Shown here piece by piece: positions 18,116-52,585 of a stretch of 64,000 bases of DNA. The notes beneath the pieces were generated by a model. The model made no database searches. It was given only the letters and a program-made list of their open reading frames with translations, and was not told where the DNA came from. The stretch is taken from the sequence record NC_047815.1. The stretch is one strand, 5' to 3'. Position 1 is the stretch's first letter. The number at the start of each line of letters is the position of its first letter. Both the position numbers and the translations under genes were made by a program.

Positions 18116-18236
18116 CAAATCTGTGGTCAAAATAATCGCAGAAATCACTAGACAAATCTTTCTCAACCTGATAGACGCGGCAGTCGAAAATCTTTTTTGA
18201 AAAAGTGCTTGCAACATGTGTTCAGCATGATATTAT
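18116..18236 (+). promoter_or_regulatory. sigma70-type promoter with displaced upstream box
   Basis: TTGCAA 18209-14, 16-nt spacer, TGn-TATTAT 18231-36; CAAATCTGTGGTCAAAA at 18116-32. Confidence 0.7.
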
Positions 18237-18324
18237 GCAATCTCAGTAAGACGCAGCGCAGACAACGCAGCGACTTACAAACGCTCTTTAACAATATGAC
18301 TAATCAACTAAGAGAGAAAATCTT

Positions 18325-18582
18325 ATGACTACTTTTAATTCTTTTGCCGTAGAACTCGATGTGATCGCTGATAACAAGTTTGATGTGCCGCGTGATATTG
18401 TAGAATATTGTGAGGCTAATAACGTCGGCCTGTTTGTAGCAGTCAGAAAAGACGTAGACAATTTGCCTATCGTTTTCACAGCGTCGAGCCGTGATGATCT
18501 TGTACAGATGATCAACACAGTTTACGAAAAAGAAGATCGTGAGCAGCAAGAATTTTTCGCAACAATGATCAAAGCATTCTGA
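18325..18582 (+). CDS. small acidic protein, paralog of 17756
   Basis: First gene after promoter; similarity to 17756. Confidence 0.75.
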   Translation: MTTFNSFAVELDVIADNKFDVPRDIVEYCEANNVGLFVAVRKDVDNLPIVFTASSRDDLVQMINTVYEKEDREQQEFFATMIKAF

Positions 18583-18590
18583 TAAAACTT

Positions 18591-18618
18591 AGGCGATGGC
18601 GTTTTGCTGTCGCCTTTT
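18591..18618 (+). terminator. intrinsic terminator
   Basis: AGGCGATGGC/GCTGTCGCCT stem then TTTT. Confidence 0.7.
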
Positions 18619-18633
18619 TCATAGGGTTGAAAA

Positions 18634-19083
18634 ATGAAAACGTTATTTATTCGCTGTGATTATGCTGGCTTCAACGCGGGCCGTGTACAACTACGTGCCG
18701 TGAATGTGCGCCGTGTGTCTGATGTTGATCGTATCGTGATGTGTATTGTTCACGATAACAAATTGCATCGCACCGTACAGATGCGCCGCGTGTCAATCGA
18801 ACATGTAGAAGCGCAAGGCGATTCAATGTGCTATGCGTTCTGCTTCACGGACCGTGATTACATTGAAACAGAACTGCGTGAAAATGAACAGCAACGTTTC
18901 GACGCCACACGCAACAACAGATTTTTCTTGCAAGACCTGCGCCAGCCTGTGATAGAACTGAAACTTGATGTTGTACCTCGCACAGCACCTCAACGTATTA
19001 AGACGCTTGACGAATACACAATAGAAGAATTGCTTGAACATGTAAAGCGCCGCATCAACGGCAAGATAACAATCGAAATCTAA
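18634..19083 (+). CDS. hypothetical protein (paralog family with 20183, 20656, 21315)
   Basis: Shared C-terminal L.xYT.E.L..V..R helix. Confidence 0.75.
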   Translation: MKTLFIRCDYAGFNAGRVQLRAVNVRRVSDVDRIVMCIVHDNKLHRTVQMRRVSIEHVEAQGDSMCYAFCFTDRDYIETELRENEQQRFDATRNNRFFLQDLRQPVIELKLDVVPRTAPQRIKTLDEYTIEELLEHVKRRINGKITIEI

Positions 19084-19087
19084 AACA

Positions 19088-19117
19088 AGGGGCCGCTCGA
19101 AAGAGTTGGCCCTTTTT
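19088..19117 (+). terminator. intrinsic terminator
   Basis: GGGCCGCTC-GAAA-GAGTTGGCCC then TTTTT. Confidence 0.75.
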
Positions 19118-19129
19118 CGTTTGTCTGCA

Positions 19130-19218
19130 CTTAACTCAAATCAGAAAAAGCTCAGATCTCGCTTAACTCAAATCGCTGTAAATTTGACTTAGTGCATGGT
19201 CGTGACTTAACTCAAATC
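19130..19218 (+). repeat. three direct copies of CTTAACTCAAATC
   Basis: Exact 13-mers at 19130, 19162, 19206. Confidence 0.9.
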
Positions 19219-19221
19219 AGA

Positions 19222-19273
19222 CAAATCTGCGGTCAAAACAGTGATTGCAATGCGGTCATAATTATCGCATTAT
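19222..19273 (+). promoter_or_regulatory. box-type sigma70 promoter
   Basis: CAAATCTGCGGTCAAAA 19222-38; TTGCAA 19245-50; CATTAT 19268-73. Confidence 0.75.
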
Positions 19274-19343
19274 ATAAGCTCAACAACGCGATGCAGTCTA
19301 CGTGATTGCGTCAACAATCAACGCTACATATGAGACAACGAAC

Positions 19344-19667
19344 ATGACGACTAACATTTTTCCAGAACTCAACATCGATGAACTGACAGCATTCGTTAAT
19401 CGCATCAATCCGCAGCTCAACAAAAACGTAAAGCTGTGTGTTGAGTCGCACGATGACGAAGACAACACAGGGCATATCTATGCGGTCGAAGTCGATGAAA
19501 ACGGAGAAGACTCTGATGCTATGTGGGGCTGGTTGATTGACGTGCCGTGTGCTGAGTGCGAGAAATTCTATTTCATGTACGGCGGTAACTTCCCGCATGA
19601 TCAAGAAGGTTCGTGCGAAATTGACGACGCTTCATTCATTGCGAAAGTAAACTCACTCGAATTCTAA
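19344..19667 (+). CDS. acidic hypothetical protein
   Basis: ATG 19344 downstream of promoter; no motif. Confidence 0.7.
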   Translation: MTTNIFPELNIDELTAFVNRINPQLNKNVKLCVESHDDEDNTGHIYAVEVDENGEDSDAMWGWLIDVPCAECEKFYFMYGGNFPHDQEGSCEIDDASFIAKVNSLEF

Positions 19668-19723
19668 TCTAACGTGCGGGCTTACGGGCCCACATCAACT
19701 CTATCATTCAAGGAATCTCAATT

Positions 19724-20128
19724 ATGTTCGCTAACGTATTTTTCGCTATCTCCGATTACAATGAATTGCAAAACTACTGTGATCTCGTCAATCGTCACTT
19801 GAGTAAAACTGACCGCAAGCTCGCCGTCAACGAAGCGTATAAAGACGCTGATTGTGTAGCTGATGCGGTCACAAGTGACAAGGGTGAACCTCTGCAAGTG
19901 CTTCACTTGATTGATGGGGAATATGACGTACAAGATTACTACGCTGTTTATTTCCCGACTGTTGAACGCCCGACGCTTGAACTGCAATACACAGCGATGC
20001 CCTACGATTGTAACGAAGCATATCCTATGCTGCACTGTGATGCAACGCCCGCAGTGTTTGCACAATTCATCGACGCACTTGATCAAGATGCGTTTCATCC
20101 TGACTTTGTGTCGCCCGACGTTGAGTAA
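19724..20128 (+). CDS. hypothetical protein
   Basis: AAGGA SD. Confidence 0.75.
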   Translation: MFANVFFAISDYNELQNYCDLVNRHLSKTDRKLAVNEAYKDADCVADAVTSDKGEPLQVLHLIDGEYDVQDYYAVYFPTVERPTLELQYTAMPYDCNEAYPMLHCDATPAVFAQFIDALDQDAFHPDFVSPDVE

Positions 20129-20182
20129 CAACTAACACGACAGGGCTTACGGGCCCTGTTCTTTGATCAAGAGAAATCTATC

Positions 20183-20659
20183 ATGCGCGATTCAACACTA
20201 GTATTACTTGTCAATGAGAGTGAATTGACACAACCCTTGCTGCATAGAACGTCACTAGCAAACGCATTCAGTTTTAATCGCTTGCGTCTGCTTGTCACTC
20301 AGGGCTCTGGCGTAAACAATCCGAGCTACGCTGTTGATGTGATTGCTGTGCAAAAACTCACAGTGACCGAAGTAAGTGCAGATAAAACCTGCATCATGAT
20401 CGATATGAACTTTGAACTTGCTGCTACTTTGCATTCAGTGGTTAGTGTCGATGAGTATAATCGTGCTAAAACCACACGATCTAATATTCGTGCTTGGACC
20501 GCACGCTGGCAACAGGGCGATATTGTGACGGGCTTCGGTCAAGTCACTGAGATCCCATACGAAGCCCGACCCGATGTTATTCGCAGTCAACTATCTAAAT
20601 TCACTACTGAACAGCTACGCGCTGAATTGTCTTTACGCGACATGGAGATCTCTCAATGA
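20183..20659 (+). CDS. hypothetical protein (paralog family)
   Basis: C-terminal LSKFTTEQLRAELSLR. Confidence 0.75.
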   Translation: MRDSTLVLLVNESELTQPLLHRTSLANAFSFNRLRLLVTQGSGVNNPSYAVDVIAVQKLTVTEVSADKTCIMIDMNFELAATLHSVVSVDEYNRAKTTRSNIRAWTARWQQGDIVTGFGQVTEIPYEARPDVIRSQLSKFTTEQLRAELSLRDMEISQ

Positions 20660-21315
20660 AAACTACATCTAACGAACATGTATTGACCGTACGCAGCACA
20701 GACCTAAGCAAGCCCCACATGATTCGCATGTTGCAGTGCGACATTGAGCGCGTCGATTGCATTCGCTTTGTATTGTTTCAACAAGACAAGCAGCCCGAAC
20801 TGTGGCTTGCTGTGAGTGCCGACTGTACAGTCGAAACGCTTGGTCCCAGCAACTATCGCAATGCTGATCTTACGATTCGCGTTATCGAGTGGCAACAGTT
20901 GTATGAACCACTGCCGAAGTTGTTGCTTGATATGGAGCATGACGGTGAACGTGCTTATCGCACGCAACGCATTGCGGACTACGCGCTTAAAACACACTTG
21001 AGTCACGACCGCATTGAGTGGCACGAAAACACTCGTCCAGAAATCTTGATTGAGCGTCTTAGTGAGTTCACAACCGATCTGTTGCTTGCAGAAGTCTTAC
21101 GCCGTAGCAGTCAAGCGTGCGATAAGGAAGATGACGAGGCATACGCAAACTGTGACGATTGCGGCGAGCCGTTGAAAGAAGATGAAGTGTTCGGCGATCA
21201 ATGCGATCTGTGTGAAAGCTGTGTATCTAATCGTGACGAAGATGATGCAGAACGCGCACAATACGACGCCCATCAAGAGCGCATCAAGCGTGGTGGCTAC
21301 GAACGAGACGAGTAA
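20656..21315 (+). CDS. hypothetical protein (paralog family) with CxxC...CxxC Zn ribbon
   Basis: LSEFTTDLLLAEVLRR; CDDC...CDLC. Confidence 0.75.
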   Translation: MKTTSNEHVLTVRSTDLSKPHMIRMLQCDIERVDCIRFVLFQQDKQPELWLAVSADCTVETLGPSNYRNADLTIRVIEWQQLYEPLPKLLLDMEHDGERAYRTQRIADYALKTHLSHDRIEWHENTRPEILIERLSEFTTDLLLAEVLRRSSQACDKEDDEAYANCDDCGEPLKEDEVFGDQCDLCESCVSNRDEDDAERAQYDAHQERIKRGGYERDE

Positions 21316-21656
21316 TGACAGCACTGTATATCAAAAGCACCGAAGCCCAGATTCGTTCTGGGCAGTTAACTGTTAGTTCAATACGCGTCAAAAACCTTCA
21401 TCTACTCAAGTCTATTTTTGTTCTTGTTGAGCGTGAGGGCATTGATAGCGTGGCGTACACAGCCGAAGTGTTGCGTGCTACAGTGCGCAGAACACCACGC
21501 AGTGCGCAGACTGCAACTCTTGAGATCACGATCGACCAGTATCGTAAGCGTCCAGCCCATCACATTGAGAACGCCTACTTTGCGAGTCGCTTTAACACCA
21601 AGCATGTGCTGGCAGACATATCACCGCACTGCAAAATCAAATGGGAGAGAGAATGA
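21315..21656 (+). CDS. hypothetical protein (paralog family)
   Basis: TAATG overlap; N-terminus resembles 18634. Confidence 0.7.
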   Translation: MTALYIKSTEAQIRSGQLTVSSIRVKNLHLLKSIFVLVEREGIDSVAYTAEVLRATVRRTPRSAQTATLEITIDQYRKRPAHHIENAYFASRFNTKHVLADISPHCKIKWERE

Positions 21657-21892
21657 AAAAGCCAAGCATAGCAGCAAGAGCTAATCTTAACTTTGTTCCT
21701 CCTGGTAAAAAGAAGGCGGGCACCAGCTTTGTTCACCCAGTAGCGTTTAGTGTTGATGATACCATGCGTCGCAAGCTAAACATCATTGCCAACAAGCGGG
21801 GTATCAAGCTGGTGGTTTTGATGCGGGAGATAACTGCCGAGTATCTTGAGCAACACAGCACGGAGTGTGACCTAACGCAAATCGAAAGCTAG
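21653..21892 (+). CDS. ribbon-helix-helix (CopG/Arc-like) DNA-binding protein
   Basis: VAFSVDDTMRRKLNIIANKRGIKLVVLMREITAEYL fits strand-helix-helix pattern. Confidence 0.65.
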   Translation: MKKPSIAARANLNFVPPGKKKAGTSFVHPVAFSVDDTMRRKLNIIANKRGIKLVVLMREITAEYLEQHSTECDLTQIES

Positions 21893-21918
21893 TCTACAGG
21901 CAGCGGGGTTGAGCAAGA

Positions 21919-21970
21919 CAAATCACTGGTTAAAATACAGCTAGAACAGATCAGATTAATCTGATACAAT
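21919..21970 (+). promoter_or_regulatory. box-type sigma70 promoter with 16-bp palindrome in spacer
   Basis: CAAATCACTGGTTAAAA 21919-35; TGn-TACAAT 21965-70; ATCAGATTAATCTGAT 21950-65. Confidence 0.75.
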
Positions 21971-22029
21971 AAATGTAGGGCAGTACATACCTCATTTAAT
22001 TCGTCATTTTGACACTAGGGAAATTCATC

Positions 22030-22212
22030 ATGCTATCAGCACTTATCATTGCTGCTATGGTTCTGTTGATTATGTGTTTTATAGGTTTTTCTCTCTATCT
22101 CCAATCCGTCATTGAGAAAGAATCGGTACTTGAAGCCGAACTCGAGGAGGCGGTTGAAAACCTCGCTGTTATTCAACGTTCACGCGAACGCCAAATAAAA
22201 CGTTCTTGGTAA
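22030..22212 (+). CDS. small single-pass membrane protein
   Basis: Hydrophobic N-terminal stretch LSALIIAAMVLLIMCFIGFSLYL. Confidence 0.65.
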   Translation: MLSALIIAAMVLLIMCFIGFSLYLQSVIEKESVLEAELEEAVENLAVIQRSRERQIKRSW

Positions 22213-22221
22213 GGAAACGCT

Positions 22222-22764
22222 ATGCAATATCCAATCGACATTGTGTCCAGCATCATGCACACAATCATCACTCATGTTCCAAACGTGAAGGGCATCAGTG
22301 AACTGAAATCCAGCTTAACTCCGCCTACTGTTACGTTCACTTTGGACGAACGCACCTATCGTGTATCGGGTTCGCTGTTTGTTCATGAGGTGCAAGGCTG
22401 TTTGTTGGCTGGTACTGGTGCTGCCGCCACAATGCAGAAAATTCTGCGTGATAAGCCCGTGCAATTTGAAGCAGTTAGTTCGGTAATCACGGGTCTGGTC
22501 AATGCTGCCTCAACTGCAACATTGAAAAGCATGGCTGAGTCGATGGGTTGGCCTGACCTTGACCCGCCTCGTGTGCTACGCAAGTGCTTTCGTGAGTATC
22601 TCGAAAAGAATGTAAATGAACAGAGTCCAGACGTTGAAAGCTGTCGTGAAGCAGTCGAACTTGTCTGGCTGTTCATGGGATCTGATAACCGTCAGCGTCT
22701 CGCCACTTCAATCGATAAACAGTTTGGGTACTCACTTGCGAAGAATATGGACTATGCGAAATAG
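22222..22764 (+). CDS. hypothetical protein
   Basis: TAAGGA SD. Confidence 0.75.
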   Translation: MQYPIDIVSSIMHTIITHVPNVKGISELKSSLTPPTVTFTLDERTYRVSGSLFVHEVQGCLLAGTGAAATMQKILRDKPVQFEAVSSVITGLVNAASTATLKSMAESMGWPDLDPPRVLRKCFREYLEKNVNEQSPDVESCREAVELVWLFMGSDNRQRLATSIDKQFGYSLAKNMDYAK

Positions 22765-22774
22765 CGGAGCGCGT

Positions 22775-23239: not shown

Positions 23240-23311
23240 CGAGATTAATCTGAAAGTAAGATTAGTCTCAACAAACGACCTTTCGACAGTTAATTTAGCT
23301 GAGGAGCTATT

Positions 23312-23626
23312 ATGTCATCATCTACCGAAATCTCCTTCATTTTCCCTTACCTGACTACTCTGGAAGTAGTTACTGGTTCAGGCAGTCTGGCAAACAAGCT
23401 GGGCGTTGACGCCAACGAGGAACAAACGTTCCTCGACAGTCAGGCGATGCAGCTCATGAACGGTCTGCACGTTCAGCAGGAACTCTGCCTGTTTGATCGC
23501 AGCATTCTCAATCTGATGATTGACCGTCAGATGGACTATGACGAAAAGATTACGACATACGAACGTGACAGCAAAGATCATGTTCCTCATGAAGGTCTGA
23601 TGTTGCTGGTGCGTCATACTCGTTAA
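23312..23626 (+). CDS. hypothetical protein
   Basis: GAGGAG SD. Confidence 0.75.
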   Translation: MSSSTEISFIFPYLTTLEVVTGSGSLANKLGVDANEEQTFLDSQAMQLMNGLHVQQELCLFDRSILNLMIDRQMDYDEKITTYERDSKDHVPHEGLMLLVRHTR

Positions 23627-27743: not shown

Positions 27744-27795
27744 CAAATAGCTGGTCAAAATGCACAGAGCAACGTGGTTGCTTTTGTGTTATAAT
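27744..27795 (+). promoter_or_regulatory. box-type sigma70 promoter
   Basis: CAAATAGCTGGTCAAAA 27744-60; TGn-TATAAT 27790-95. Confidence 0.8.
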
Positions 27796-27839
27796 AGTGT
27801 TAGAGCAATTGTGCTCACGTTCTATATGGAAATCTCACT

Positions 27840-28119: not shown

Positions 28120-28485
28120 GTGGCCCGTTTGTTTACTGCAAAGCACCGTCAACAATTTATGCGTGAACCTGATGATCTTCACTATCACGGTGAAACATCA
28201 GAACGCATTTACATTGAGGGCATGGCGGTGCTTGCTGACTTGCATTACATTCAGAAGGTTCTCAGCTATCGCAGCAGTACAATGTCTGTAAAGAATAGTC
28301 GTAAACGTTTACGGGAAATTCGTGACAATCTTTATGACCCGCGCAGCACTCGACGTTTAGTTGCTGTGTACAAGGAACTAGAGGGGCGCCTGCGTGCGCT
28401 CAAGCGTCACTACTTGTTTCAACATGAGGCGCTGCATAATCCTAAACAGTTATCAAATATTGGTTGGTGGAAACAATGGCCGTAG
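28120..28485 (+). CDS. hypothetical protein
   Basis: TAAGGA SD, GTG start. Confidence 0.7.
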   Translation: MARLFTAKHRQQFMREPDDLHYHGETSERIYIEGMAVLADLHYIQKVLSYRSSTMSVKNSRKRLREIRDNLYDPRSTRRLVAVYKELEGRLRALKRHYLFQHEALHNPKQLSNIGWWKQWP

Positions 28486-28733
28486 GTTTTGTACGTGATG
28501 ATGGTGTGAACGATACCATCGAAAGCAATATCAACAACGAAATAGATTTTGCGCGTAGCCAACTGATTGGAGTTGGCACAACGCATTGTGTTGAGTGTGG
28601 TCAAGCTATTCCACTCGCTCGACGTAAAGCAATGCCGAGCGCCAAGTATTGTATTGATTGCCAGTCGGGTCACGATGGTTCGGGTTACGTTTACTACAAT
28701 CGTCGTGGAAGCAAGGACAGCCAGTTGAGGTGA
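28476..28733 (+). CDS. DksA/TraR-family C4 zinc-finger protein, YbiI-like
   Basis: CVECGQAIPLARRKAMP..KYCIDCQ; C-terminal YNRRGSKDSQLR matches enterobacterial YbiI as recalled. Confidence 0.9.
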   Translation: MAVGFVRDDGVNDTIESNINNEIDFARSQLIGVGTTHCVECGQAIPLARRKAMPSAKYCIDCQSGHDGSGYVYYNRRGSKDSQLR

Positions 28734-31733: not shown

Positions 31734-32041
31734 AGAATATTCTCGCACGACTTTATGAACATGTTGCCAGCGGTAAATCAAACGCTGTAAGTACCATTAC
31801 CGATATCCTTGAATATCAGGGCGGCGTTGAAGATATTGAACAAAACCCACAACCGTTCCTTGATTACCTGCACGACAAGTTTGATATTCTCGATTGGTTT
31901 GAAACGCGTATCATTCTGGAAGATATGTTGTGTGTAACGTTTCCTCGTTTGTTTGATGAACACCTCGAGCGCGCAACAACTGTTGAGCAGTTTGAACAGA
32001 CATTGCTGCCTTATATGGAGGTCGAGGATGATAGTGCCTAA
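31727..32041 (+). CDS. acidic hypothetical protein
   Basis: ORF in packed run. Confidence 0.7.
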   Translation: MVKNILARLYEHVASGKSNAVSTITDILEYQGGVEDIEQNPQPFLDYLHDKFDILDWFETRIILEDMLCVTFPRLFDEHLERATTVEQFEQTLLPYMEVEDDSA

Positions 32042-32486
32042 CATCGAAGATCATACTGGCATCGACAATGCCGTGATACTTGTTGATTCTGAAATCGATG
32101 AGGGCAAGCGAGCTATTGAGTCTTGCTTACTTGCCTTTGGCCTGAAAGCCTCAGACATTTTCTATTCACCAGTTTACTTTGACGAGCACGGTGAATCGCA
32201 AGGAGGATGGGGCGCAGAGCTGACAGATAGTTCGAAAGGACGTCTCAAAATCTGTGATGATAAATCAATTCGTGACGTCTGCATGATTAGCGGTGATGAC
32301 CTGCCTAGCATACTCGATACAATCCGCGATACTGGTAATCGTATGCGGCGTCGTGCTCTCGGTACAGTAAAGACCCTGAGCAAGCGTCGTGTGTATCTTG
32401 AATTGACCTCAGACGAATACGCCTCTCTGCAAGCTAAAGCAGGTGGACAATCTATCAGTGATTATATTAAGAGAAAACTTCTATGA
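32028..32486 (+). CDS. protein with C-terminal ribbon-helix-helix domain
   Basis: RRVYLELTSDEYASLQAKAGGQSISDYIKRKLL, MobC/CopG-like. Confidence 0.65.
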   Translation: MIVPNIEDHTGIDNAVILVDSEIDEGKRAIESCLLAFGLKASDIFYSPVYFDEHGESQGGWGAELTDSSKGRLKICDDKSIRDVCMISGDDLPSILDTIRDTGNRMRRRALGTVKTLSKRRVYLELTSDEYASLQAKAGGQSISDYIKRKLL

Positions 32487-33254: not shown

Positions 33255-34238
33255 ATGAAACTCGGATTCGCCTGTAAACTTATTGACGAGAACGGCAAGC
33301 AACCATTCGCTAGTCGCAGCGTCAACTTTTCTCAATTGTCTAAGCTGTCTGAAACAGATCAGATTGCAAAGCTGATAGAGATTGCACAGCACAATGTTCA
33401 GGCCCTGTATGATATGATTGTTCATGTTGGTCGCTTGCGTCCTGATATGCGTATGTTCCGCATCACCAGTGGCTTGCTGCCGTTGTTTACTCATGAGCAC
33501 GTCCATCATCTGTATGTTGAGTACGTGAATGATCTGATTGCGCCTCAGCTTGCAGCGTGTGGTCGTGCCGCTCGTAGTCGTGACGTTCGTATCAGCTTTC
33601 ACCCAGGTCAGTTTACCGTGCTTGCCTCTCATCGTCCTGACGTGATTGAGAACAGCATCGAGGAACTTGAGTACCACACCTGGTGTGCAGTTCAGATGGG
33701 TTATGGTCGCAAGTTCCAAGACTTCAAGATCAATATTCATCTGTCAGGTAAACTTGGCGCATTCGAGTTTCGTCGTAGCTTCGGTCGTCTCAGCCGTGAG
33801 TGTCGTCGTATGCTCACAGTTGAAAACGACGAAGTGTCCTCAAGCATTGAAGAATGTTTGACGCTTGCGGACATCTGTCCTGTTGTTCTCGACATTCACC
33901 ATCATTGGGTTATGACCAACGAGTACATATCTAGTGGTGACAGTCGCGTTCAGCAGGTTATCGACTCTTGGCGCGGCGTTAGGCCGACGATGCATTTCAG
34001 TGTATCACGCCCAGAGTTTGTTCCTTCAGACACACTGCCAGACCAGAACAAGTTGAGCGTCAACAAGGTCAAGCTACGTGCTCACAGTGACTACTACCAC
34101 AACGAGGTAGTTAATGCATGGGCACTGTCATTTGACCAGTTCGATATTATGTGCGAGTCGAAAGCTAAGAATCTAGCGCGAACAGCGTTGCTTTTAAGGC
34201 AGCCGTACTCTGCAAATCATTGGTCAAAAAACAGCTAG
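33255..34238 (+). CDS. uvsE: UV-damage endonuclease
   Basis: LGFACK, FRITSGLLP, SFHPGQF, NIH, LTVENDE, VLDIHHH, HFS, AHSD, MCESKAK. Confidence 0.92.
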   Translation: MKLGFACKLIDENGKQPFASRSVNFSQLSKLSETDQIAKLIEIAQHNVQALYDMIVHVGRLRPDMRMFRITSGLLPLFTHEHVHHLYVEYVNDLIAPQLAACGRAARSRDVRISFHPGQFTVLASHRPDVIENSIEELEYHTWCAVQMGYGRKFQDFKINIHLSGKLGAFEFRRSFGRLSRECRRMLTVENDEVSSSIEECLTLADICPVVLDIHHHWVMTNEYISSGDSRVQQVIDSWRGVRPTMHFSVSRPEFVPSDTLPDQNKLSVNKVKLRAHSDYYHNEVVNAWALSFDQFDIMCESKAKNLARTALLLRQPYSANHWSKNS

Positions 34239-34264
34239 ATCTTGAGGTCGTAATACGATATACT
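34213..34264 (+). promoter_or_regulatory. box-type sigma70 promoter overlapping uvsE 3' end
   Basis: CAAATCATTGGTCAAAA 34213-29; TATACT 34259-64. Confidence 0.75.
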
Positions 34265-34316
34265 GTCTGTGCAGATGCTGTCTGTTTATTCTGTTAAACA
34301 AGCATAGAGGTATATC

Positions 34317-38317: not shown

Positions 38318-38954
38318 ACTCAACGAGCAGGGCATACAGCGTCTCAAGGAAATGATAGACCAGCTACGCACTAAAACCGCTGGAGCAAAAACGTTGTATG
38401 ACACGGTAGACTTGGGCTTTGCTCGTCCAAGTGTGACCGTATTCGAAATTGTTCAAGGCAGCTACTGCCTAGACCTGATGCTGAGTGAATCAGCATTGTG
38501 TGCGATAGACGAAACACTGGTACCCGAACTACTGGACCTTGCCGCAGATTGCAGCGTTGGTCTTTTTCTTACGTGTGCTGCCGAACTTGCTGAGCGTGCT
38601 CGTGCTCTCCACAAGCATATCTTTATGGCTCGTAGCTACCACACGTTTGCCTATCTTCACGGTGCAGGGTTGTTATACACAGTTGTTATCTTCTCGGATA
38701 AAGGACGGTATCTGAGTGCTATGTCGCTTTTCGGACAAGTCGAAGGTCCTGCTCAATATGTTGAAGGCTGGAACATACCAGCTCCCAAATCTCTTGCAGA
38801 GATAGACCAAACCTCACCAGAAGAAATAGCAAAACGTTTCAAGATAAGACGCGATGATGTGATCAGCGTGACAGGCGATGCAGACACTGTGACCATCAAG
38901 CTGGCACGACAGGCACTGACGAAACGAGCAAAATTCTGGTCAAAACAGCGTTAG
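38310..38954 (+). CDS. hypothetical protein
   Basis: ORF in packed run. Confidence 0.75.
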   Translation: MTKLNEQGIQRLKEMIDQLRTKTAGAKTLYDTVDLGFARPSVTVFEIVQGSYCLDLMLSESALCAIDETLVPELLDLAADCSVGLFLTCAAELAERARALHKHIFMARSYHTFAYLHGAGLLYTVVIFSDKGRYLSAMSLFGQVEGPAQYVEGWNIPAPKSLAEIDQTSPEEIAKRFKIRRDDVISVTGDADTVTIKLARQALTKRAKFWSKQR

Positions 38955-38980
38955 TATTGCGTGGTACTATGTGATACTAT
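38929..38980 (+). promoter_or_regulatory. box-type sigma70 promoter overlapping a gene 3' end
   Basis: CAAAATTCTGGTCAAAA 38929-45; TGn-TACTAT 38975-80. Confidence 0.75.
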
Positions 38981-39063
38981 ATCTGTGCAGCGCAAGCTGC
39001 TACTACACTATAGTCCTCGATGACTATCACGCGAAAGCGTTTATTAATAAGGATAATATTTCA

Positions 39064-41784: not shown

Positions 41785-42096
41785 ATGGCAAGAAAGTATT
41801 TACTCCGCTCAGAGCGACCAACAACTCTGCCTAATCTCAGAGCGTACTTGTTGTATTGCGCAAGGACTCCAAACAAGCACAAAGAAGTGTTCCGACATTA
41901 CTACGAACGAAGCAAGACAGAACTACATCGTCAGCGTTTCTTCTTAGGGAACCTGTTCGGCTTTAAGGTTAAGTCCAAAAAGGGCGCAGTCCGTTATACA
42001 GTGATTTGGATTGATCCGTATAACTATGACTGTCTAGTATTAGATCATGTGGAGAAGAAGCCTAAATACAAAAACCTTTACGGCCTGATTCTTTAA
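41785..42096 (+). CDS. basic hypothetical protein
   Basis: ORF in packed run. Confidence 0.65.
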   Translation: MARKYLLRSERPTTLPNLRAYLLYCARTPNKHKEVFRHYYERSKTELHRQRFFLGNLFGFKVKSKKGAVRYTVIWIDPYNYDCLVLDHVEKKPKYKNLYGLIL

Positions 42097-43606: not shown

Positions 43607-44377
43607 ATGATGCATCGTCGACCTCAGCACATGACCTTCACCGAGTTTCAAAAGCACGTAGATACTTTCTTTGATGCTGCTATCACAACCTACGGGCTTG
43701 AGAACTTGTGGCAGTATGTGTGCCAGAACAACACCTCTTGCAGTGGGCACAACTATCACTCTACGCGTCACATGCGTGAAGTAACATCGATTGCTTTCTG
43801 GTTGTTGCTAAAAGACTTTGATCGTGAGGTGTTTGGTAAAGACAAAGATCAGAACCACGCACAAGATGAAGTCCGCGCGATGTTGGCAGCATGTATGATT
43901 CACGATATGGACCACTCGCTCGGTCATCAAGACGATGCGTGGAACATCAACACTGCTATCGATGCGCTGGTTGAATACGTTAAACGTTACGGTGATGACA
44001 GCTTTGGATTCGTTGTTCATGCGGGCACAGGCATTGCTGAGATTGAACGCAATATCCGTACTACGCAGTTTCCATATCAATCTGATTGGGCACCTGCAAC
44101 TATCTACCAACAATGTATTCGTGACGCCGACATCCTGTACTCAATGCAAGACAATGCCTGTATGGCGGTACTTGAAAACTTACGCACAGAAATGTCAGTC
44201 ACTTATCCAAAGTACGCTGCAATGTCGCGTCGTCAATTCTTAGCAGACCGTCTGCCGTTCATTCGCAGTTGCGAAATGTTTACTCCGACGGGCCGTAGTG
44301 TAATGTCTTATCAAATTCAGAGCGGCCACCACGAGCGCGTGATGGATGCGTACATCGACAACGTAGAAAGCAAATAG
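43607..44377 (+). CDS. HD-domain phosphohydrolase, class-I PDE-like
   Basis: NYHSTRH...AACMIHDMDH...RDADIL. Confidence 0.8.
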   Translation: MMHRRPQHMTFTEFQKHVDTFFDAAITTYGLENLWQYVCQNNTSCSGHNYHSTRHMREVTSIAFWLLLKDFDREVFGKDKDQNHAQDEVRAMLAACMIHDMDHSLGHQDDAWNINTAIDALVEYVKRYGDDSFGFVVHAGTGIAEIERNIRTTQFPYQSDWAPATIYQQCIRDADILYSMQDNACMAVLENLRTEMSVTYPKYAAMSRRQFLADRLPFIRSCEMFTPTGRSVMSYQIQSGHHERVMDAYIDNVESK

Positions 44378-44422
44378 TTGGTCGAAACTGTGATAGTGAC
44401 GCAGACCTTCTCCTGATATAAT
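44371..44422 (+). promoter_or_regulatory. box-type sigma70 promoter
   Basis: CAAATAGTTGGTCGAAA 44371-87; TGn-TATAAT 44417-22. Confidence 0.8.
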
Positions 44423-44448
44423 AAACATGCAGGCTGCAACAGATGCAG

Positions 44449-46265: not shown

Positions 46266-46275
46266 AGGAAAAGAA

Positions 46276-47706: not shown

Positions 47707-47990
47707 TGCAATTTAAAGATCTCTCACCAAACGTTAAACTAGCTGTGCTGTTGATGCACAACTTTGGTATCATCGAACAAATCTGCGATCAGCAAGGTAT
47801 TGGCGAAGAAGCTAAGGAAGAAGCCATCACAGAAAGTCTTGCTGTTATTGGTATTTCGGCTGATGATGTTCAAGGCATTCTGTCAAACAACTTATCAGAG
47901 CAAGAAGCCTTAGAGCTTGAACAGTACCTCAATCAGTATGCTGAGGATGACTCTGACGACGAGCACGACGACACGCCACACATGCACTAA
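47706..47990 (+). CDS. small acidic hypothetical protein
   Basis: TAATG overlap. Confidence 0.7.
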   Translation: MQFKDLSPNVKLAVLLMHNFGIIEQICDQQGIGEEAKEEAITESLAVIGISADDVQGILSNNLSEQEALELEQYLNQYAEDDSDDEHDDTPHMH

Positions 47991-48025
47991 TGTCTGTGGG
48001 AGGTAACAGCCTCCCCAACTTCTTT

Positions 48026-48060
48026 CAAACTTCACTCCGTTAGGAAACTTCGCTATGAAA
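48026..48060 (+). repeat. 35-bp leader identical to 44449-44483
   Basis: Exact match including SD and ATG AAA. Confidence 0.9.
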
Positions 48061-49068
48061 ATCTCAATGTCTCATGTACCAGAACTAGGCTCAAGCCATG
48101 AAGTAGGTATTCTTATAGGTGATGACGAACAGCATGAACGCGTTATCTATGTTCCAATCCTTGTTGATGAAAGACAAGTACGCATCCCTGTTAATGGTGG
48201 CACTCTCGGTCTTCACGCAATCAAACGCCCTATGCTGGTAATCAATACACTGACTCACAAGTATCGGCTTGTGGTTGCCAACATTCGGCAGCATGTAAAG
48301 AGCAACATTCATACGTTCACGCCAGATAAAAGTATTCTCGACCATATGCTTGCTGTGCCTGGTACGTTTCTTGATTTATCCGACTCAGTGCCTGATGACT
48401 ATCAGCCTACGTCTGATCGTTATGGTGTGTTTGCTTATTCAACGCCTGTCGATCGTGGTGCGCATATAAAGCCTCGTCAGATCTATATCAGTGATCGTAA
48501 GTTTCATCATCCGTTTCTTGACGCGATTTCTGATGAGGACATGCAGCAGGTTCTCGACTACATCAAGCAGACCAAGACGTGGGAAGACCTGTGTCTTGAT
48601 CATGCTCGTGGTCGCTGCAAGATTGATGCGCCAGGCATTGATACCTACTTGCGTTATGAGACAGATATCCCTAAATATGTTCCTGAGATATTTGCGGCAG
48701 CATGGAAATCTCTGAACATCATTAACGCCATGCCACCAGCAGAGATTGCAGATCGGCGCACAGAGATGGTAACAGCTATTGAAGTTGCTATGTCGTTTGA
48801 TCGTCTTTGGGCTTGCGGTCCTAAAGTAACGTATGCCGGGGAGATTCCTGAAATGCGTTTTGAGTGGCAACGTGAAGAACGTGAAGGTCAGGTGGCAGCT
48901 ACTCGCTACATGTGTTACTGCGTTGTGCCAAACGATCTGCCTATACCAGGTCGCTTTCTCGTTATCGACACGCAGGCAGAAGGGTTTGAGAATCGCTTCC
49001 GTCCGTTTATGTCTATTAGTGATGCTCTGACTTTCGTATCAACCGAATACCACAAAGAAGAGGTTTAA
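48055..49068 (+). CDS. hypothetical protein
   Basis: Start within duplicated leader. Confidence 0.8.
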   Translation: MKISMSHVPELGSSHEVGILIGDDEQHERVIYVPILVDERQVRIPVNGGTLGLHAIKRPMLVINTLTHKYRLVVANIRQHVKSNIHTFTPDKSILDHMLAVPGTFLDLSDSVPDDYQPTSDRYGVFAYSTPVDRGAHIKPRQIYISDRKFHHPFLDAISDEDMQQVLDYIKQTKTWEDLCLDHARGRCKIDAPGIDTYLRYETDIPKYVPEIFAAAWKSLNIINAMPPAEIADRRTEMVTAIEVAMSFDRLWACGPKVTYAGEIPEMRFEWQREEREGQVAATRYMCYCVVPNDLPIPGRFLVIDTQAEGFENRFRPFMSISDALTFVSTEYHKEEV

Positions 49069-49069
49069 T

Positions 49070-49441
49070 ATGATGATGCAAGACGGAACCAAAATCGCAG
49101 CCAAAGATATGTTAGCTGCCAGCACTATCCCTGCCGAACAGCGCATAGCTCATACGGTACCTAACGTTGTTATCGTGGCGGTTGTGTATGAGTCTGACAG
49201 TTTCAGTGGTCAGCGTCATGATGGTTTCTGCTACATGCCGAACAACGAATCCTATCAGGCATTCAAAGCGCATTTGCAAAAGCACAAGAGCCGTGAAAGC
49301 TACTGTTTCATGACAGACGTTAATCTACTGTCTATAGAAGATGCAGGACTTGAGGCGATGATCGCTGCGGTGGCTGAGCGCCCAGATCGACCGTGGCTGT
49401 GGGTAGATACTGATTATGCTGTATGTGCGTGGTACGACTAA
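49070..49441 (+). CDS. hypothetical protein
   Basis: GAGGT SD. Confidence 0.75.
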   Translation: MMMQDGTKIAAKDMLAASTIPAEQRIAHTVPNVVIVAVVYESDSFSGQRHDGFCYMPNNESYQAFKAHLQKHKSRESYCFMTDVNLLSIEDAGLEAMIAAVAERPDRPWLWVDTDYAVCAWYD

Positions 49442-49445
49442 TCAG

Positions 49446-49497
49446 CAAAATCGTGGTCAAAATAGCTGTTGCGTTTAGGCGCTTGTTTTGATAAACT
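49446..49497 (+). promoter_or_regulatory. box-type sigma70 promoter
   Basis: CAAAATCGTGGTCAAAA 49446-62; TTGCGT 49469-74; TGn-TAAACT 49492-97. Confidence 0.8.
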
Positions 49498-49547
49498 GTG
49501 AGTGGGCAACAAGCTCACTCATATACAACGTCTGAGGAGACGAGACA

Positions 49548-49979
49548 GTGACTACTAAGATGACAGGATTACAGATTCACAACGCACGTAAAAACGATCC
49601 ATACGACTGGACTCGTTTGACTTCTCAAGTTCAAGGAATGCTGATTCAAGCCGAAGCTGAGAAGATACAAATGGTGGCCATGCCCCTCACCGCTTTTCCT
49701 AAGTTTAAAGAGCACGCCAATCTAAACTATGTGCTTGATGAATTGAACGACTGGCGTTTATCCGAACTGTCTACTCTATCTCAAATCAGTCATGATTGGT
49801 TTGCTAGTGATGGAACACACTTTGATTATGTGTTGTTTATTCGTTGTCCTGAGGCTCGTCAGACAATGCGTACTTTTGATGCGGAAACAAACAAGCTGGT
49901 TGACGCCCGTATGTTAAGTAGCTCGACCATCATCATGCCAAAAGATTTTGAGTTGTTTGATACCGAAATAGCAGAATAA
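49548..49979 (+). CDS. hypothetical protein
   Basis: GAGGAG SD, GTG start. Confidence 0.75.
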   Translation: MTTKMTGLQIHNARKNDPYDWTRLTSQVQGMLIQAEAEKIQMVAMPLTAFPKFKEHANLNYVLDELNDWRLSELSTLSQISHDWFASDGTHFDYVLFIRCPEARQTMRTFDAETNKLVDARMLSSSTIIMPKDFELFDTEIAE

Positions 49980-50038
49980 AAATATCTAGCGCCTGCACAA
50001 GCAGGCGCTTTGCTTATACACTGTCTGAGGAGACGGAA

Positions 50039-50530
50039 ATGAATACAACGCATAAATTCGACGATGAATCAAACACAGCCATTAGCCTTGCTGTTGAGGC
50101 CGCACAAAAGCTGATCGGTGATCTCAACATGCAGTCAATTGACGTTGCTATCACTGGTGCTCGCGTGTATCTCACTGTTGCTGATATGCTTGGCGGTCAT
50201 TTGCAGCAAGCCAGTTTTATCTTTAACGGCCAGCTCGTAACTGTGGTCATCAACGTTAAGCAAGCTGATGACGCTGAGGAATTTGTCTCAAACGAAATTG
50301 ATCGCAATTTTCAGATGGAACTCGGCGACCTACTGATCGGCACTATGGACGAAGCTGTTGATGAAGGAGTTATCAGCGGTTACGAACAAGGTGCGATGTT
50401 TATCGCTGCCCTGTCCTTGATGTATATCGGACTCAAGAACAGCGGCATTACGGAACTCAGATTCCGACACAGCAAGAAAAACTACGTTTCACACATTACC
50501 CTTATGCCAGAGGAAACTGAATCAAAATGA
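50039..50530 (+). CDS. acidic hypothetical protein
   Basis: GAGGAG SD. Confidence 0.75.
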   Translation: MNTTHKFDDESNTAISLAVEAAQKLIGDLNMQSIDVAITGARVYLTVADMLGGHLQQASFIFNGQLVTVVINVKQADDAEEFVSNEIDRNFQMELGDLLIGTMDEAVDEGVISGYEQGAMFIAALSLMYIGLKNSGITELRFRHSKKNYVSHITLMPEETESK

Positions 50531-50715
50531 AAACCGTGAACGAGTTGGTAAAGCAATTAAAGCAGTCCAATTCTATCGTATTAACCGAATCAGTGGCAGA
50601 CAGTGTTCTGCCCGATTTAAAATTCACCCTTGATGTGTTGTGTATGAATTACCGTCTGCGTCAAATCGATACACTCAGCGGAGGGCGCCAGACGAAAATT
50701 GAATTACGCAGTTAA
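50527..50715 (+). CDS. small hypothetical protein
   Basis: ATGA overlap. Confidence 0.65.
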   Translation: MKTVNELVKQLKQSNSIVLTESVADSVLPDLKFTLDVLCMNYRLRQIDTLSGGRQTKIELRS

Positions 50716-50857
50716 CTGAACTACCCTTTGGCCTTACGTTATTTATCCATCCCTCCTGACAGAGGTTGCGTAAGGTCCTTTTTAAAGCGTGTTTTCGAGC
50801 GTGCTTTAAAAAGCTGATAACTAGAAAACTCACCTTCTAGTTGGTACGTGAAAGCTG

Positions 50858-50909
50858 CAAATCTGCGGTCAAAACAGTGCTAGCAACAAGCGAAACGCTG
50901 TGCTACAAT
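50858..50909 (+). promoter_or_regulatory. box-type sigma70 promoter
   Basis: CAAATCTGCGGTCAAAA 50858-74; TAGCAA 50881-86; TGn-TACAAT 50904-09. Confidence 0.8.
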
Positions 50910-50915
50910 ATATGT

Positions 50916-51245
50916 GCAGCATGTCGTGTGCTGTAACATCGAGGAAACTTGCTAGTCTTTGAGTCTCTATCTATATGTGCGGCCATGCACTGATATGAGA
51001 CTCCTTTTTAAAACAGGTTCAATGAGCCTAGTTTAAAAAGCAATTAAAGCCAAGAGACTTCAACCCACTACTTGGTTAGTAACACCTCTGGTGCCAGGTC
51101 GGCGGCTGCATCCCAGAGACTGGGGCCTGGCTCCCTTTTTAAAGCTGATTTTGATTAGTCAGTTTTCGAAAGGGTTCGATACCCTTGAGCGCATTTGGAT
51201 TTACGCGGTTTTCACCAACTGTGCTCTCATATTAAACCGCAAAGG
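50916..51245 (+). ncRNA. candidate structured non-coding RNA / long structured leader
   Basis: ~330 nt with no credible ORF after a strong promoter; at least 7 consecutive hairpins, a T-loop-like arm and a possible pseudoknot. Confidence 0.55.
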
Positions 51246-51253
51246 AAATAACA

Positions 51254-51967
51254 ATGCCTACATTACGCAAACCTCGTCCAGCAGATAAGTTCTCTCAAGC
51301 TCGCGCCGCCAAGAACTCTCCTGAACGTCAAGAAGCAGCCAAGAAGAAAGTGCCACGCGGTCCTAAATCAGCAGGCCCTCGTCGCAATACTGTCCAAGTG
51401 GAACGCGCTGCTACGATACGCGACGAGGACCGTGTTGTAAACCTCGTGCTGTTTATCTTACGTGGTTGGAAACAAGCTAAGGCGGATAGTGAAGCCAGCG
51501 CTGCACAGGGCATCATTAAGGTAAGTCGTCGTGAAATCGAACTAGCTTTACGCGATCTCAAAAACACGCGTTTCACTAAAATCCCGACACTGATTAACGA
51601 TGTGTTGGTCTACAACGAAATCGTAAATGAGTTTGGTCAGTGGGTGTACGTAGAGCATGATAGTCCTGACTGGATGTTCATCTTAACGCCAGATCGTGAA
51701 ACGCTTGTGACACGCTGTCGCATTCGCCGCAATAAAGAGACAGACGACCTGACACAGCTCATATCCTCAGAAGTTCTGTTGAAAGATTGGAGCGAAGAAG
51801 AGGTAGAGATAGACGTCTCAGAAGAAGGCGAGGAGTATCAATCATGGACCCTCAGCCAACTTCAAAACTTTGCTAAAGCCGAAGGTTACATGGGCATCAA
51901 AGATGAAGGATGGAACGATCGTTCAGCACTCATTGCTCGAATCATCAACAAGGGCGCAATCAAATGA
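51254..51967 (+). CDS. protein with basic N-terminus and C-terminal Rho-N/HeH-like helical module
   Basis: AAGGA SD; WTLSQLQNFAKAEG...RSALIARII. Confidence 0.75.
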   Translation: MPTLRKPRPADKFSQARAAKNSPERQEAAKKKVPRGPKSAGPRRNTVQVERAATIRDEDRVVNLVLFILRGWKQAKADSEASAAQGIIKVSRREIELALRDLKNTRFTKIPTLINDVLVYNEIVNEFGQWVYVEHDSPDWMFILTPDRETLVTRCRIRRNKETDDLTQLISSEVLLKDWSEEEVEIDVSEEGEEYQSWTLSQLQNFAKAEGYMGIKDEGWNDRSALIARIINKGAIK

Positions 51968-52293
51968 GTCTGACTATTCGTTCTGCCGCTGAGGCCGCCT
52001 CGATGATCGTAGAAAACGTTACTCTTTACTCTAATGAGAAAGAGTTCGAAACAATACTACCTCGCTTTAAAATGCCAGAGACGGCGATACGTCGAATTTC
52101 AGGACACGCTCGCATAATACCTGAAAGTTATATCGAACAATTGTCTGTAGAAATACAGCAACTCGATTGGATGCTGCTGCGATGTAGTGCAAAAGAATTT
52201 ATCTTTATGCATTGTGATGTACCGTCAAACTGGACGACATTGAGTGCCAAGCGTGTGGCGCCAAATCATAGAGACGACTCAGTAGACGATTAA
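51964..52293 (+). CDS. hypothetical protein
   Basis: ATGA overlap. Confidence 0.65.
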   Translation: MSLTIRSAAEAASMIVENVTLYSNEKEFETILPRFKMPETAIRRISGHARIIPESYIEQLSVEIQQLDWMLLRCSAKEFIFMHCDVPSNWTTLSAKRVAPNHRDDSVDD

Positions 52294-52321
52294 CTCTAAT
52301 TGAGCAAGGACGCATAATCTA

Positions 52322-52373
52322 CAAATAGATGGTCAAAATAGCGGTAGATTTCTACCGCTATTTTTGATACACT
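52322..52373 (+). promoter_or_regulatory. box-type sigma70 promoter overlapped by a 14-bp inverted repeat
   Basis: CAAATAGATGGTCAAAA 52322-38; TGn-TACACT 52368-73; inverted repeat 52335-64. Confidence 0.75.
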
Positions 52374-52380
52374 AGAGATC

Positions 52381-52533
52381 AAGCAGTACATCTTTTTAAA
52401 GTGTTCTAAGTGGGATTAGAGTGCTTTACAAAGAGCAAGACTTTTGACTGTGTGGCGGACTTCTAATGTCCGATGAATACGCGTTCAACGCCACACAGTC
52501 CTTTTTGCAGAGAGCACCATCTAGTGTACTGTG
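52381..52533 (+). ncRNA. candidate small structured RNA
   Basis: No ORF between two tandem promoters; 13-bp and 12-bp stems, U-tract at 52501, ends complementary. Confidence 0.55.
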
Positions 52534-52585
52534 CAAAACAGTGGTCAAAATGACCGTTGCTTTTAACCATGATTTTTCGTACTAT
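52534..52585 (+). promoter_or_regulatory. box-type sigma70 promoter
   Basis: CAAAACAGTGGTCAAAA 52534-50; TTGCTT 52557-62; TACTAT 52580-85. Confidence 0.8.

Follow-up and report, generated by a model that had tools for sequence, protein, structure and literature searches.

A conserved upstream box in the host-type promoters of Erwinia phage Yoloswag and related jumbo phages

Phage-specific elements upstream of the -35 hexamer are known from the sites of P2 Ogr and P4 Delta (TGT-N12-ACA near -55) and of Mu Mor (-51 to -33), which are dyads bound by dimers at late or middle promoters. The UP element consists of a distal and a proximal subsite that together span -58 to -37, where RNA polymerase contacts A/T minor grooves with the C-terminal domain of its alpha subunit (alpha-CTD) (PMC2613000). 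In phage T4, the upstream promoter region has been tied to the manipulation of alpha by the phage proteins Alt and ModA (PMC2988021). Here, we describe a 17-bp box, CAAAW-N4-GGTCAAAA, which recurs upstream of host-type promoters in Erwinia phage vB_EamM_Yoloswag and lies at the position of an UP element. The analysed stretch of 64,000 nucleotides, hereafter the window, is 100% identical to the Yoloswag genome (KY448244.1 / NC_047815.1, 259,700 bp), of which it covers positions 186,001-250,000. Unless a genome position is stated, coordinates are those of the window and are obtained by subtracting 186,000 from the genome position.

Yoloswag is a 'hairy' jumbo myovirus, and its kin include pEa_SNUABM_5, the Alexandra/Y3/AD1 group, Yersinia phage fHe-Yen9-02 and the Dickeya JA phages (PMC6143709). 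We scanned the whole Yoloswag genome piecewise, in six pieces and on both strands, and inspected the homologous block over about 50 kb in each of pEa_SNUABM_5, AD1, fHe-Yen9-02 and JA11. No description of the box, or of the promoters of Yoloswag, Y3, AD1 or the JA phages, was found in the searchable literature. As judged by its recurrence and conservation, the box is a real, clade-wide promoter element that is undescribed there.

The box and its promoter cassette

The window holds nine exact copies of the box, all on the plus strand, compared with 0.01 expected from shuffled sequences (the orphan box and box promoters 1, 3-5 and 7-10 in Table 1). Two further copies on the same strand, those of box promoters 2 and 6, carry a single mismatch. 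An earlier note on this DNA, made from the letters alone, had listed the same copies, and our scan found all of its box coordinates to be correct. Alignment also reproduced the spacing that it had reported, as the -10 hexamer starts 30 nt after the end of the box, with 29 intervening nucleotides, in ten promoter copies. When the hexamer is set at -12 to -7, the box falls at -58 to -42 with its centre at -50, and the ten copies share the order box, 6 nt, a weak -35 hexamer (T-x-G), a 17-nt spacer and TAnnnT. A recount on these ten copies returned the previous numbers, with an extended TGn (TG at -15/-14) in seven of them and a -35 that begins with TAG in six, TTG in three and GAG in one.

Among the Yoloswag copies, the -10 element is well conserved (T-12 in 10/11, A-11 and T-7 in 11/11 each), as are T-35 and G-33. 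Within the box, G-49, G-48, T-47 and C-46 are near-invariant and match the -10 in their conservation; to each side of them follow three or four random positions. The positions between box, TGn and -10 are likewise random, which argues that the copies are neither recent duplicates nor conversion tracts. The box region is 62% A+T, has a C at -58 and at -46 and lacks dyad symmetry. At two gene ends the box is read in frame as W-S-K (TGG-TCA-AAA) and gives rise to the C-termini ..HWSKNS and ..FWSKQR that had been pointed out before; here, the TAG of the -35 provides the stop codon (34236-34238 and 38952-38954). At the 44371 copy, the stop codon of the upstream gene falls within the variable N4 of the box.

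Genome-wide, the box occurs in 13 copies, with none on the minus strand. The earlier note had named a failure of the spacing across the genome as grounds to abandon its proposal. The spacing holds: one further exact copy with the same geometry is found at genome position 250,974, which is 974 nt beyond the window end and upstream of topoisomerase II, and a degenerate box near genome position 255,284 (GGACGAAA) has a spacing of 28. All 13 copies are confined to one 51-kb block that extends from the terminator at 18010-18029 to the topoisomerase genes. This block consists mostly of small genes of unknown function and is transcribed rightward throughout; many of its genes have no orthologs in pEa_SNUABM_5, and its DNA identity to the nearest relative is low.

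The copy at 18116 is displaced, as had been noticed before. It has no -10 at the standard spacing and scores 15 bits with a promoter weight matrix, compared with 46-64 bits for the functional-looking copies. We regard it as a relic, as the homologous site in pEa_SNUABM_5 is an ordinary box promoter. The complement of the box holds TTGACC, a near-perfect -35, and an antisense promoter was therefore considered; it was rejected, because no -10 follows 16-18 nt downstream and TTGACC is absent in the relatives.

One relaxed definition, which required a TAnnnT -10 hexamer, retrieved 43 cassettes from the five genomes (12 from Yoloswag, 7 from pEa_SNUABM_5, 5 from AD1, 10 from fHe-Yen9-02 and 9 from JA11). 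These counts are lower bounds, and inspection by eye added one more AD1 promoter, whose first half-box is weaker. All 43 cassettes are on the coding strand, and the opposite strand has none. The distance between box and hexamer is 29 nt in 38 cassettes, 28 nt in three and 30 nt in two, and TGn is present in 30/43. A -35 of TTG is commoner in cassettes without TGn (6/13) than in those with it (5/30; p = 0.06). This trade-off fits the mix-and-match of elements that is expected for sigma-70 promoters (PMC2613000). The assignment of the boxes to sigma-70-type promoters is supported by the extended -10 and weak -35 elements.

Orthologous promoters, such as those before gp290, gp314 and the topoisomerase homologs, are alike in box, TGn, -10 and a hairpin further downstream, and have diverged in the rest of their sequence. 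Orthologs of box promoter 5 are present in pEa_SNUABM_5, AD1 and fHe-Yen9-02, and the two tandem promoters at 52322 and 52534 have a counterpart in JA11, where a tandem pair stands ahead of the orthologous gene. A pattern scan of IMG/VR for the box plus the hexamer returned multiple matches only in contigs of this phage clade; matches elsewhere were singletons at about the chance rate. No box promoters were present in the 50 kb examined of the Pseudomonas phage Lu11.

A 5' stem-loop opens about two thirds of the 43 predicted transcripts. The mean z-score of these segments is -1.17, compared with -0.45 in controls 150 nt downstream (Wilcoxon p = 0.009), and the raw folding energies of promoter-start and control segments did not differ significantly (p = 0.13). 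The hairpin of the gp314-family promoter (box promoter 10) is kept in place in six phages with differing sequences and includes three compensatory pairs, with the covariation support limited by a consensus-structure alignment that misaligned the two most divergent sequences. 5' hairpins of this kind stabilise E. coli mRNAs, and by analogy the hairpins of the cassettes may have an mRNA-stabilising role.

UP position, lineage-specific core and promoter classes

The claim that the box occupies the UP position proved sound, as it lies at -58 to -42 in every fixed-spacing copy and thus within the UP location directly upstream of the -35. Work by Estrem et al. in 1998/1999 reportedly arrived at the UP consensus NNAAAWWTWTTTTNNNAAANNN. 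We counted matches out of 15 to this consensus in the canonical register and ranked them among all 22-mers of the genome. The boxes score 8-10, which corresponds to the top 0.2-4%. Their A-tracts (AAAW at -57 to -54 and AAAA at -45 to -42) coincide with A positions of the UP consensus, and G-49/G-48 stand where the consensus has TT. A score of 13 is reached at a single site of the genome, 18185-18206, which is in register with TTGCAA, a 16-nt spacer and TGaTATTAT. This site has no G/C core and carries T's at the GG positions of the box. The contrast between the boxes and this coreless site agrees with the earlier view that the box is no plain UP element. By these scores, the box sits where an UP element would act but resembles the UP consensus only in part, and its sequence would not pass for that of a plain UP element.

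At a distance of 69 nt, the orphan box is followed by the textbook UP promoter at 18185-18236, with gp249 and gp250 under its control and a terminator behind each of these two genes (18591-18615 and 19098-19119). In pEa_SNUABM_5, the same upstream terminator is followed by a box promoter of the ordinary kind and by unrelated genes; this phage has no equivalent of the UP promoter, which seems to be a Yoloswag-specific replacement. For the same reason, we rejected the possibility that 18185-18236 is an immediate-early promoter for a box binder encoded by gp249 or gp250.

The core of the box differs between phage lineages. TGGTC is found in 10/12 Yoloswag cassettes and also in pEa_SNUABM_5, AD1 has TGGTC, AGGCT or TGGAC, and fHe-Yen9-02 has mostly CGGCT. 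In JA11 the core is TGTCC in 8/9 cassettes, and JA29 and three uncultivated contigs contain several TGTCC copies each. G-49 is invariant in all 43 promoters, whereas position -48 is G in 24/24 promoters of Yoloswag, pEa_SNUABM_5 and AD1 and T in 9/9 promoters of JA11 (p = 3e-8). AD1 and the JA phages were isolated on one shared strain, Dickeya solani MK10, yet differ in their cores, which means that the host does not set the core. Recent copying does not account for the uniformity within a genome either, because the unconstrained positions of the cassettes are randomised. A constrained site that is fixed differently in each lineage is the pattern that co-evolution with a lineage-encoded reader would produce.

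Two other motifs precede genes elsewhere in the Yoloswag genome. The CTGTAAATA motif preceded by A/T, of the form (A/T)CTGTAAA(T/A/C), has 42 copies genome-wide, 41 of which are in sense to the local genes. It is typically situated 25-40 nt before the start codons of genes for replication and nucleotide metabolism, and is also found before the sigma operon. The motif resembles the T4 late promoter TATAAATA, and the Lu11 record (NC_017972.1) annotates the same motif as 'putative middle/late promoter' (CTGTAAAT..). The third motif, [GAT]CTAATTT, has 23 copies, all of them in sense (23/23) and mostly 30-45 nt before structural genes such as those for the tail sheath and head proteins, and it is probably a late promoter class. 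In Lu11, the CTAATTT motif adjoins the CTGTAAATA motif (at about 19927 of the Lu11 piece). Both motifs lack sigma-70 architecture. Scans for canonical sigma-70 promoters, by weight matrix and by consensus, found no other conserved class and returned scattered matches in coding sequences, fewer than in shuffles. Because the box cassettes are the only sigma-70-type class found and the rest of the genome uses the two other motifs, we take them to be early promoters; they are probably read by the host polymerase and the earliest to fire.

The phage also encodes a divergent sigma factor, gp237 (5891-6925), which belongs to PHROG 17569, with identities of 70-85% among the enterobacterial relatives and of 34% in Lu11. 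No sigma-70 similarity of gp237 was detected in Pfam, NCBIfam or the Protein Data Bank (PDB). HHpred places its homolog in phage PaBG in the sigma-70 family (PMC7412058). The gp237 gene is located outside the box block and is preceded by the CTGTAAAC motif.

Possible readers of the box

The explanation that we lean towards, with slightly less than even confidence, is a composite element, in which alpha-CTD contacts on the A-tracts are combined with a phage-lineage-specific reader of the core. The box would be the upstream module of an early-promoter cassette of about 75 bp that is read by the host sigma-70 RNA polymerase. In this cassette, the box at -58 to -42 would be followed by 6 nt, a T-x-G -35, a 17-nt spacer usually with TGn, TAnnnT, the +1 about 7 nt later and often a 5' stem-loop. 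AAAW (-57 to -54) and AAAA (-45 to -42) would dock two alpha-CTDs in the manner of an UP element, and the G/C-containing core (TGGTC in Yoloswag) would be read by a further protein. This protein would be phage-encoded, because the specificity travels with the phage lineage. By occupying the alpha-CTD site, the reader could hold the polymerase and activate transcription, either as a virion-borne protein or through feedback on basal transcription. Alternatively, it could displace alpha-CTD and shut early transcription off. An activator that is made only after infection would lack a starting point, and the reader would therefore need virion delivery, basal activity of the promoters, or a later action as a feedback activator or in shut-off. 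T4 offers precedents aimed at alpha, namely Alt, which is injected, and the early protein ModA, and the mechanism by which T4 early promoters are shut off is still unknown (PMC2988021).

The earlier note had left the choice between an optimised UP element and the site of a phage activator. The sequence evidence leans towards a mixed answer, with A-tracts at UP positions plus a lineage-fixed core. Its analogy with T4 MotA/AsiA fails in anatomy, as the box is centred at -50 instead of -30 and T-35 and G-33 are retained. Neither the 16 window proteins scanned with Pfam nor the annotation of the record contained a member of the MotA or AsiA families. A more far-reaching proposal is that a new phage protein replaces or captures alpha-CTD at the UP position, and that its specificity has co-evolved with the box (GGTC, GGCT, GTCC) across genera of sigma-encoding jumbo phages. 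Such a protein may be delivered by the virion, as the box promoters seem to be the first to fire. We regard this proposal as doubtful.

Several observations weigh against a reader of the core and lend strength to a serious rival, a pure UP variant, in which two host alpha-CTDs are the sole readers, the G/C core is a structural spacer and the lineage differences are drift. In pEa_SNUABM_5, AD1, JA11 and fHe-Yen9-02, every sigma-70-type promoter that was found carries the box. If box promoters are the only host-type promoters, as they appear to be in four of the five genomes, they must work at time zero and fire before any phage protein is made, which favours the host polymerase alone. In addition, fHe-Yen9-02 and AD1 hold mixed core types, and for this reason the core may be a degenerate requirement (G-K-H-Y) with lineage differences that stem from drift. 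Searches of the candidates against Pfam, NCBIfam and PHROGs yielded no conserved DNA-binding protein, and the structural models of gp296 and gp290 match no DNA-binding fold. The ribbon-helix-helix (RHH)-like tail of another candidate, gp277, is found only in Yoloswag, pEa_SNUABM_5 and fHe-Yen9-02 and is absent in the box-bearing AD1 and JA11. The pure UP variant also agrees with the placement of the A-tracts on consensus A's in a box that covers -58 to -42 (PMC2613000), and with its fixed position, as expected for a polymerase-intrinsic element. Extended -10 promoters with a weak -35 moreover need upstream contacts, and strong conservation of the upstream region has a precedent in the T4 early promoters (PMC2988021). 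Nevertheless, alpha-CTD reads A/T minor grooves (PMC2613000), whereas G-49 is invariant in 43/43 promoters and GGTC is fixed in Yoloswag amid random flanks. Bases such as those at -49 to -46 are not known to be read by alpha-CTD. The switch from G to T at -48 is complete between phages that share a host strain, the one consensus UP element of Yoloswag has T's in place of the GG of the box, and the boxes match the consensus at no more than 8-10 of 15 positions. On balance, we hold the pure UP variant to be rather unlikely, and prefer the composite element.

The remaining explanations are harder to reconcile with the data. A host transcription factor or nucleoid protein that is common to Enterobacterales and exploited to boost early promoters would be on hand at time zero. 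It could explain why the conservation of the box exceeds mere A/T richness, and the Erwinia, Dickeya and Yersinia hosts are related. It is nonetheless very improbable, as two phages that grow on the same host strain have different cores and the recurrence in IMG/VR is restricted to this phage clade. In a comparison of consensus sequences by eye, the sites of Fis, IHF, CRP and LexA, the MarA/SoxS marbox, the PhoB box and the P2 Ogr dyad did not fit in spacing or sequence. In another explanation, the repeats would persist mainly as recombination cassettes that shuffle small genes, with the conservation of the box a by-product of copying. The cassettes do recur through a gene-variable block in which many genes lack orthologs even in pEa_SNUABM_5, and the PeSLs of T4-like phages are a precedent (PMC4122927, PMC2839356). 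The copies are, however, alike only at box, TGn and -10 with random positions in between, and these few positions are also what orthologous promoters retain across genera, leaving this the least probable of the explanations. Slightly better placed, and still very improbable, is the view that the cassettes serve the phage sigma gp237 instead of host sigma-70, with the box as part of what its holoenzyme recognises. This sigma is conserved in the phage and all relatives (PHROG 17569), and its PaBG homolog is assigned to the sigma-70 family by HHpred (PMC7412058). Yet the -10, TGn and 17-nt spacer are textbook features of host sigma-70, to which gp237 has no detectable similarity in Pfam, NCBIfam or PDB, and the box is 29 nt away from the -10, beyond the reach of sigma region 4. 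Furthermore, the motif that accompanies the gp237 family as far as Lu11 is CTGTAAATA and not the box, and the gp237 gene itself sits outside the box block behind the CTGTAAAC motif.

The binders that the earlier note had put forward for testing, encoded at 21653, 32028 and 29714 together with the TraR homolog, gave no match to a DNA-binding family in Pfam, NCBIfam or PHROGs. By eye, gp256 (21653) and the tail of gp277 (32028) are RHH-like and gp272 (29714) is helix-turn-helix-like. gp277 (32028-32486) is a two-part protein; its N-terminal domain, which contains an invariant ESQGGW motif, is shared by the five phages. The DksA/TraR zinc finger of gp268 (28476-28733) was confirmed (PF01258, E = 1.6e-14; NF008243, E = 7e-27), and gp268 is the best conserved small protein of the block, with 67-74% identity in all four relatives. 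As a box binder it was rejected, because its family binds polymerase and not DNA. The box promoters have A/T-rich discriminators, a kind that is usually spared by DksA/TraR-type factors.

None of the block proteins conserved in all five phages has a DNA-binding Pfam match, and the conserved early proteins gp284, gp285, gp290, gp293, gp296, gp312, gp321 and gp322 had no Pfam match of note. gp296 (41785-42096) comprises 103 aa, is very basic (22 K+R versus 8 D+E) and is 48-76% identical in all five phages. Its AlphaFold model (pLDDT 74) consists of helices plus a small SH3/Tudor-like barrel without a significant PDB match, and the model of gp290 (pLDDT 83) is a helical bundle without a match. 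Although it is part of the early block, gp296 has a late-type CTAATTT motif (41740) directly upstream, and it could be a virion or DNA-associated protein. The reader of the composite element, if it exists, may be encoded elsewhere than in the block.

The coordinates of the promoters and related features are collected in Table 1. The whole of the gp248 open reading frame (ORF; 18033-18200), with the orphan box inside it, falls in regulatory sequence between the terminator and the UP promoter; gp248 probably does not represent a gene. Leaders without an annotated gene follow two of the box promoters (50916-51090, 175 nt, and 52380-52647, 268 nt), the longer of which contains box promoter 10 and a 43-codon ORF (52466-52597). 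Small genes missed by the annotation, or regulatory RNA, could account for these long leaders. For gp290 (GTG 38971) and gp300 (ATG 44427), the annotated start lies upstream of or at the predicted transcription start. The conflict is explained if translation begins at the downstream ATGs that the predicted transcription starts favour, which also fits the ortholog lengths: ATG 39064, after AAGGA, yields a gp290 of 99 aa (orthologs 98-103 aa), and ATG 44478, after AGGAAA, a gp300 of 186 aa (ortholog 188 aa).

Table 1. Promoters, motifs and related features in Yoloswag (window positions unless marked as genome positions)
Feature	Position	Strand	Description
Intrinsic terminator	18010..18029	+	8-bp G+C stem, then T run; closes the upstream unit and opens the box-promoter block; same hairpin before the first box promoter of pEa_SNUABM_5
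Orphan (relic) box	18116..18132	+	exact match, without -10 at the standard spacing
Box-less textbook sigma-70 promoter	18185..18236	+	UP 18185-18206; -35 TTGCAA 18209-18214; 16-nt spacer with TGn; -10 TATTAT 18231-18236
Box promoter 1	19222..19280	+	box 19222-19238; -35 TTGCAA 19245-19250; no TGn; -10 CATTAT 19268-19273; predicted +1 about 19280
Box promoter 2	21919..21977	+	one-mismatch box GGTTAAAA; -35 TAGAAC; TGa; -10 TACAAT 21965-21970
Box promoter 3	27744..27802	+	-35 GAGCAA; TGt; -10 TATAAT 27790-27795; then 5' stem-loop
Box promoter 4	34213..34271	+	overlaps the end of a UvsE-like endonuclease gene (..WSK..); -35 TAG = stop; -10 TATACT 34259-34264
Box promoter 5	38929..38987	+	overlaps the end of gp289 (..FWSKQR, stop); -35 TAG = stop; TGa; -10 TACTAT 38975-38980; stem-loop GCAGC..GCTGC
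Box promoter 6	44371..44429	+	one-mismatch box GGTCGAAA; -35 TAGTGA; TGa; -10 TATAAT 44417-44422
Box promoter 7	49446..49504	+	-35 TTGCGT; TGa; -10 TAAACT 49492-49497; then 7-bp 5' stem-loop
Box promoter 8	50858..50916	+	-35 TAGCAA; TGc; -10 TACAAT 50904-50909; 5' stem-loop; 175-nt leader to the next annotated gene
Box promoter 9	52322..52380	+	tandem pair, upstream member; -35 TAGATT; TGa; -10 TACACT 52368-52373
Box promoter 10	52534..52592	+	tandem pair, downstream member; -35 TTGCTT; no TGn; -10 TACTAT 52580-52585; stem-loop 52593-52610
CTGTAAATA-type motif	3674, 4405, 6938, 32757, 61479, 62203		motif scan; about 35 more copies genome-wide
CTAATTT motif	12719, 13097, 41740; genome 70542, 97648, 112503, 125025, 149668, 153280, 162661, 168578, others		motif scan

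Meaning and comparison with known systems

The jumbo phages of the Yoloswag/Alexandra/Salmond group are biocontrol candidates against fire blight and soft rot, and nothing had been reported on how they programme transcription. Our analysis yields a putative map of three promoter classes, formed by the box (probably early), CTGTAAATA and CTAATTT, together with corrected gene starts, and it isolates one element whose conservation classical UP rules cannot explain. If a phage protein reads the core, the box would represent a new route by which the host polymerase is redirected, through an upstream contact with alpha. A takeover of alpha would amount to an attack on the alpha/UP contact, in parallel to sigma appropriation at the -35 contact. 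If alpha-CTD acts alone, the sequence rules for UP elements would be wider than thought, and the cassettes would provide a set of compact, strong and portable promoters.

The T4 early promoters, 'uber' promoters of the host sigma-70 polymerase that unite UP, -35, TGn and -10 elements, are similar in that many copies of a strong host-type promoter, commonly with TGn, precede small early genes, and in that conservation reaches well upstream of the -35 into the alpha-CTD region. In contrast, they combine an excellent -35 with an A/T-rich, UP-like upstream region, whereas the Yoloswag promoters have a weak T-x-G -35 and a lineage-variable, G/C-containing core. The E. coli UP element of the rrnB P1 type shares the position directly upstream of the -35, and the A-tracts of the box fall on its consensus A's. 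The Yoloswag box differs in having GG for TT, C at -58 and -46 and individually conserved G/C positions. With T4 MotA promoters, about half of which have TGn (PMC2988021), the cassettes share a phage-specific box that keeps a fixed distance to a host-type -10. They may also share the logic of a phage protein that reads a promoter element while on the host polymerase. The MotA box, however, is centred at -30 and replaces the -35, and MotA promoters form a middle class, while the Yoloswag box is centred at -50, keeps the T and G of the -35 and belongs to what appears to be the earliest class.

The sites of P2 Ogr, P4 Delta and Mu Mor resemble the box as phage-specific elements in the -60 to -40 region that accompany a poor -35 and act via contacts with alpha-CTD or sigma. 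The Yoloswag box differs from them in that it is not a dyad and is located on apparently early promoters. The 'putative middle/late promoter' of Lu11, whose motif recurs about 40 times in Yoloswag, illustrates that this group of phages has conserved phage-specific promoter motifs, but it constitutes a different class from the box, without the -35 or TGn architecture. Finally, the cassettes are comparable to PeSLs as an early promoter that is repeated in a region of small, variable genes (13 copies in the 51-kb block). A PeSL combines a terminator stem-loop with a promoter (PMC4122927). In the Yoloswag clade, about two thirds of the cassettes have a stem-loop downstream of the predicted +1, and terminators lie upstream of some only.

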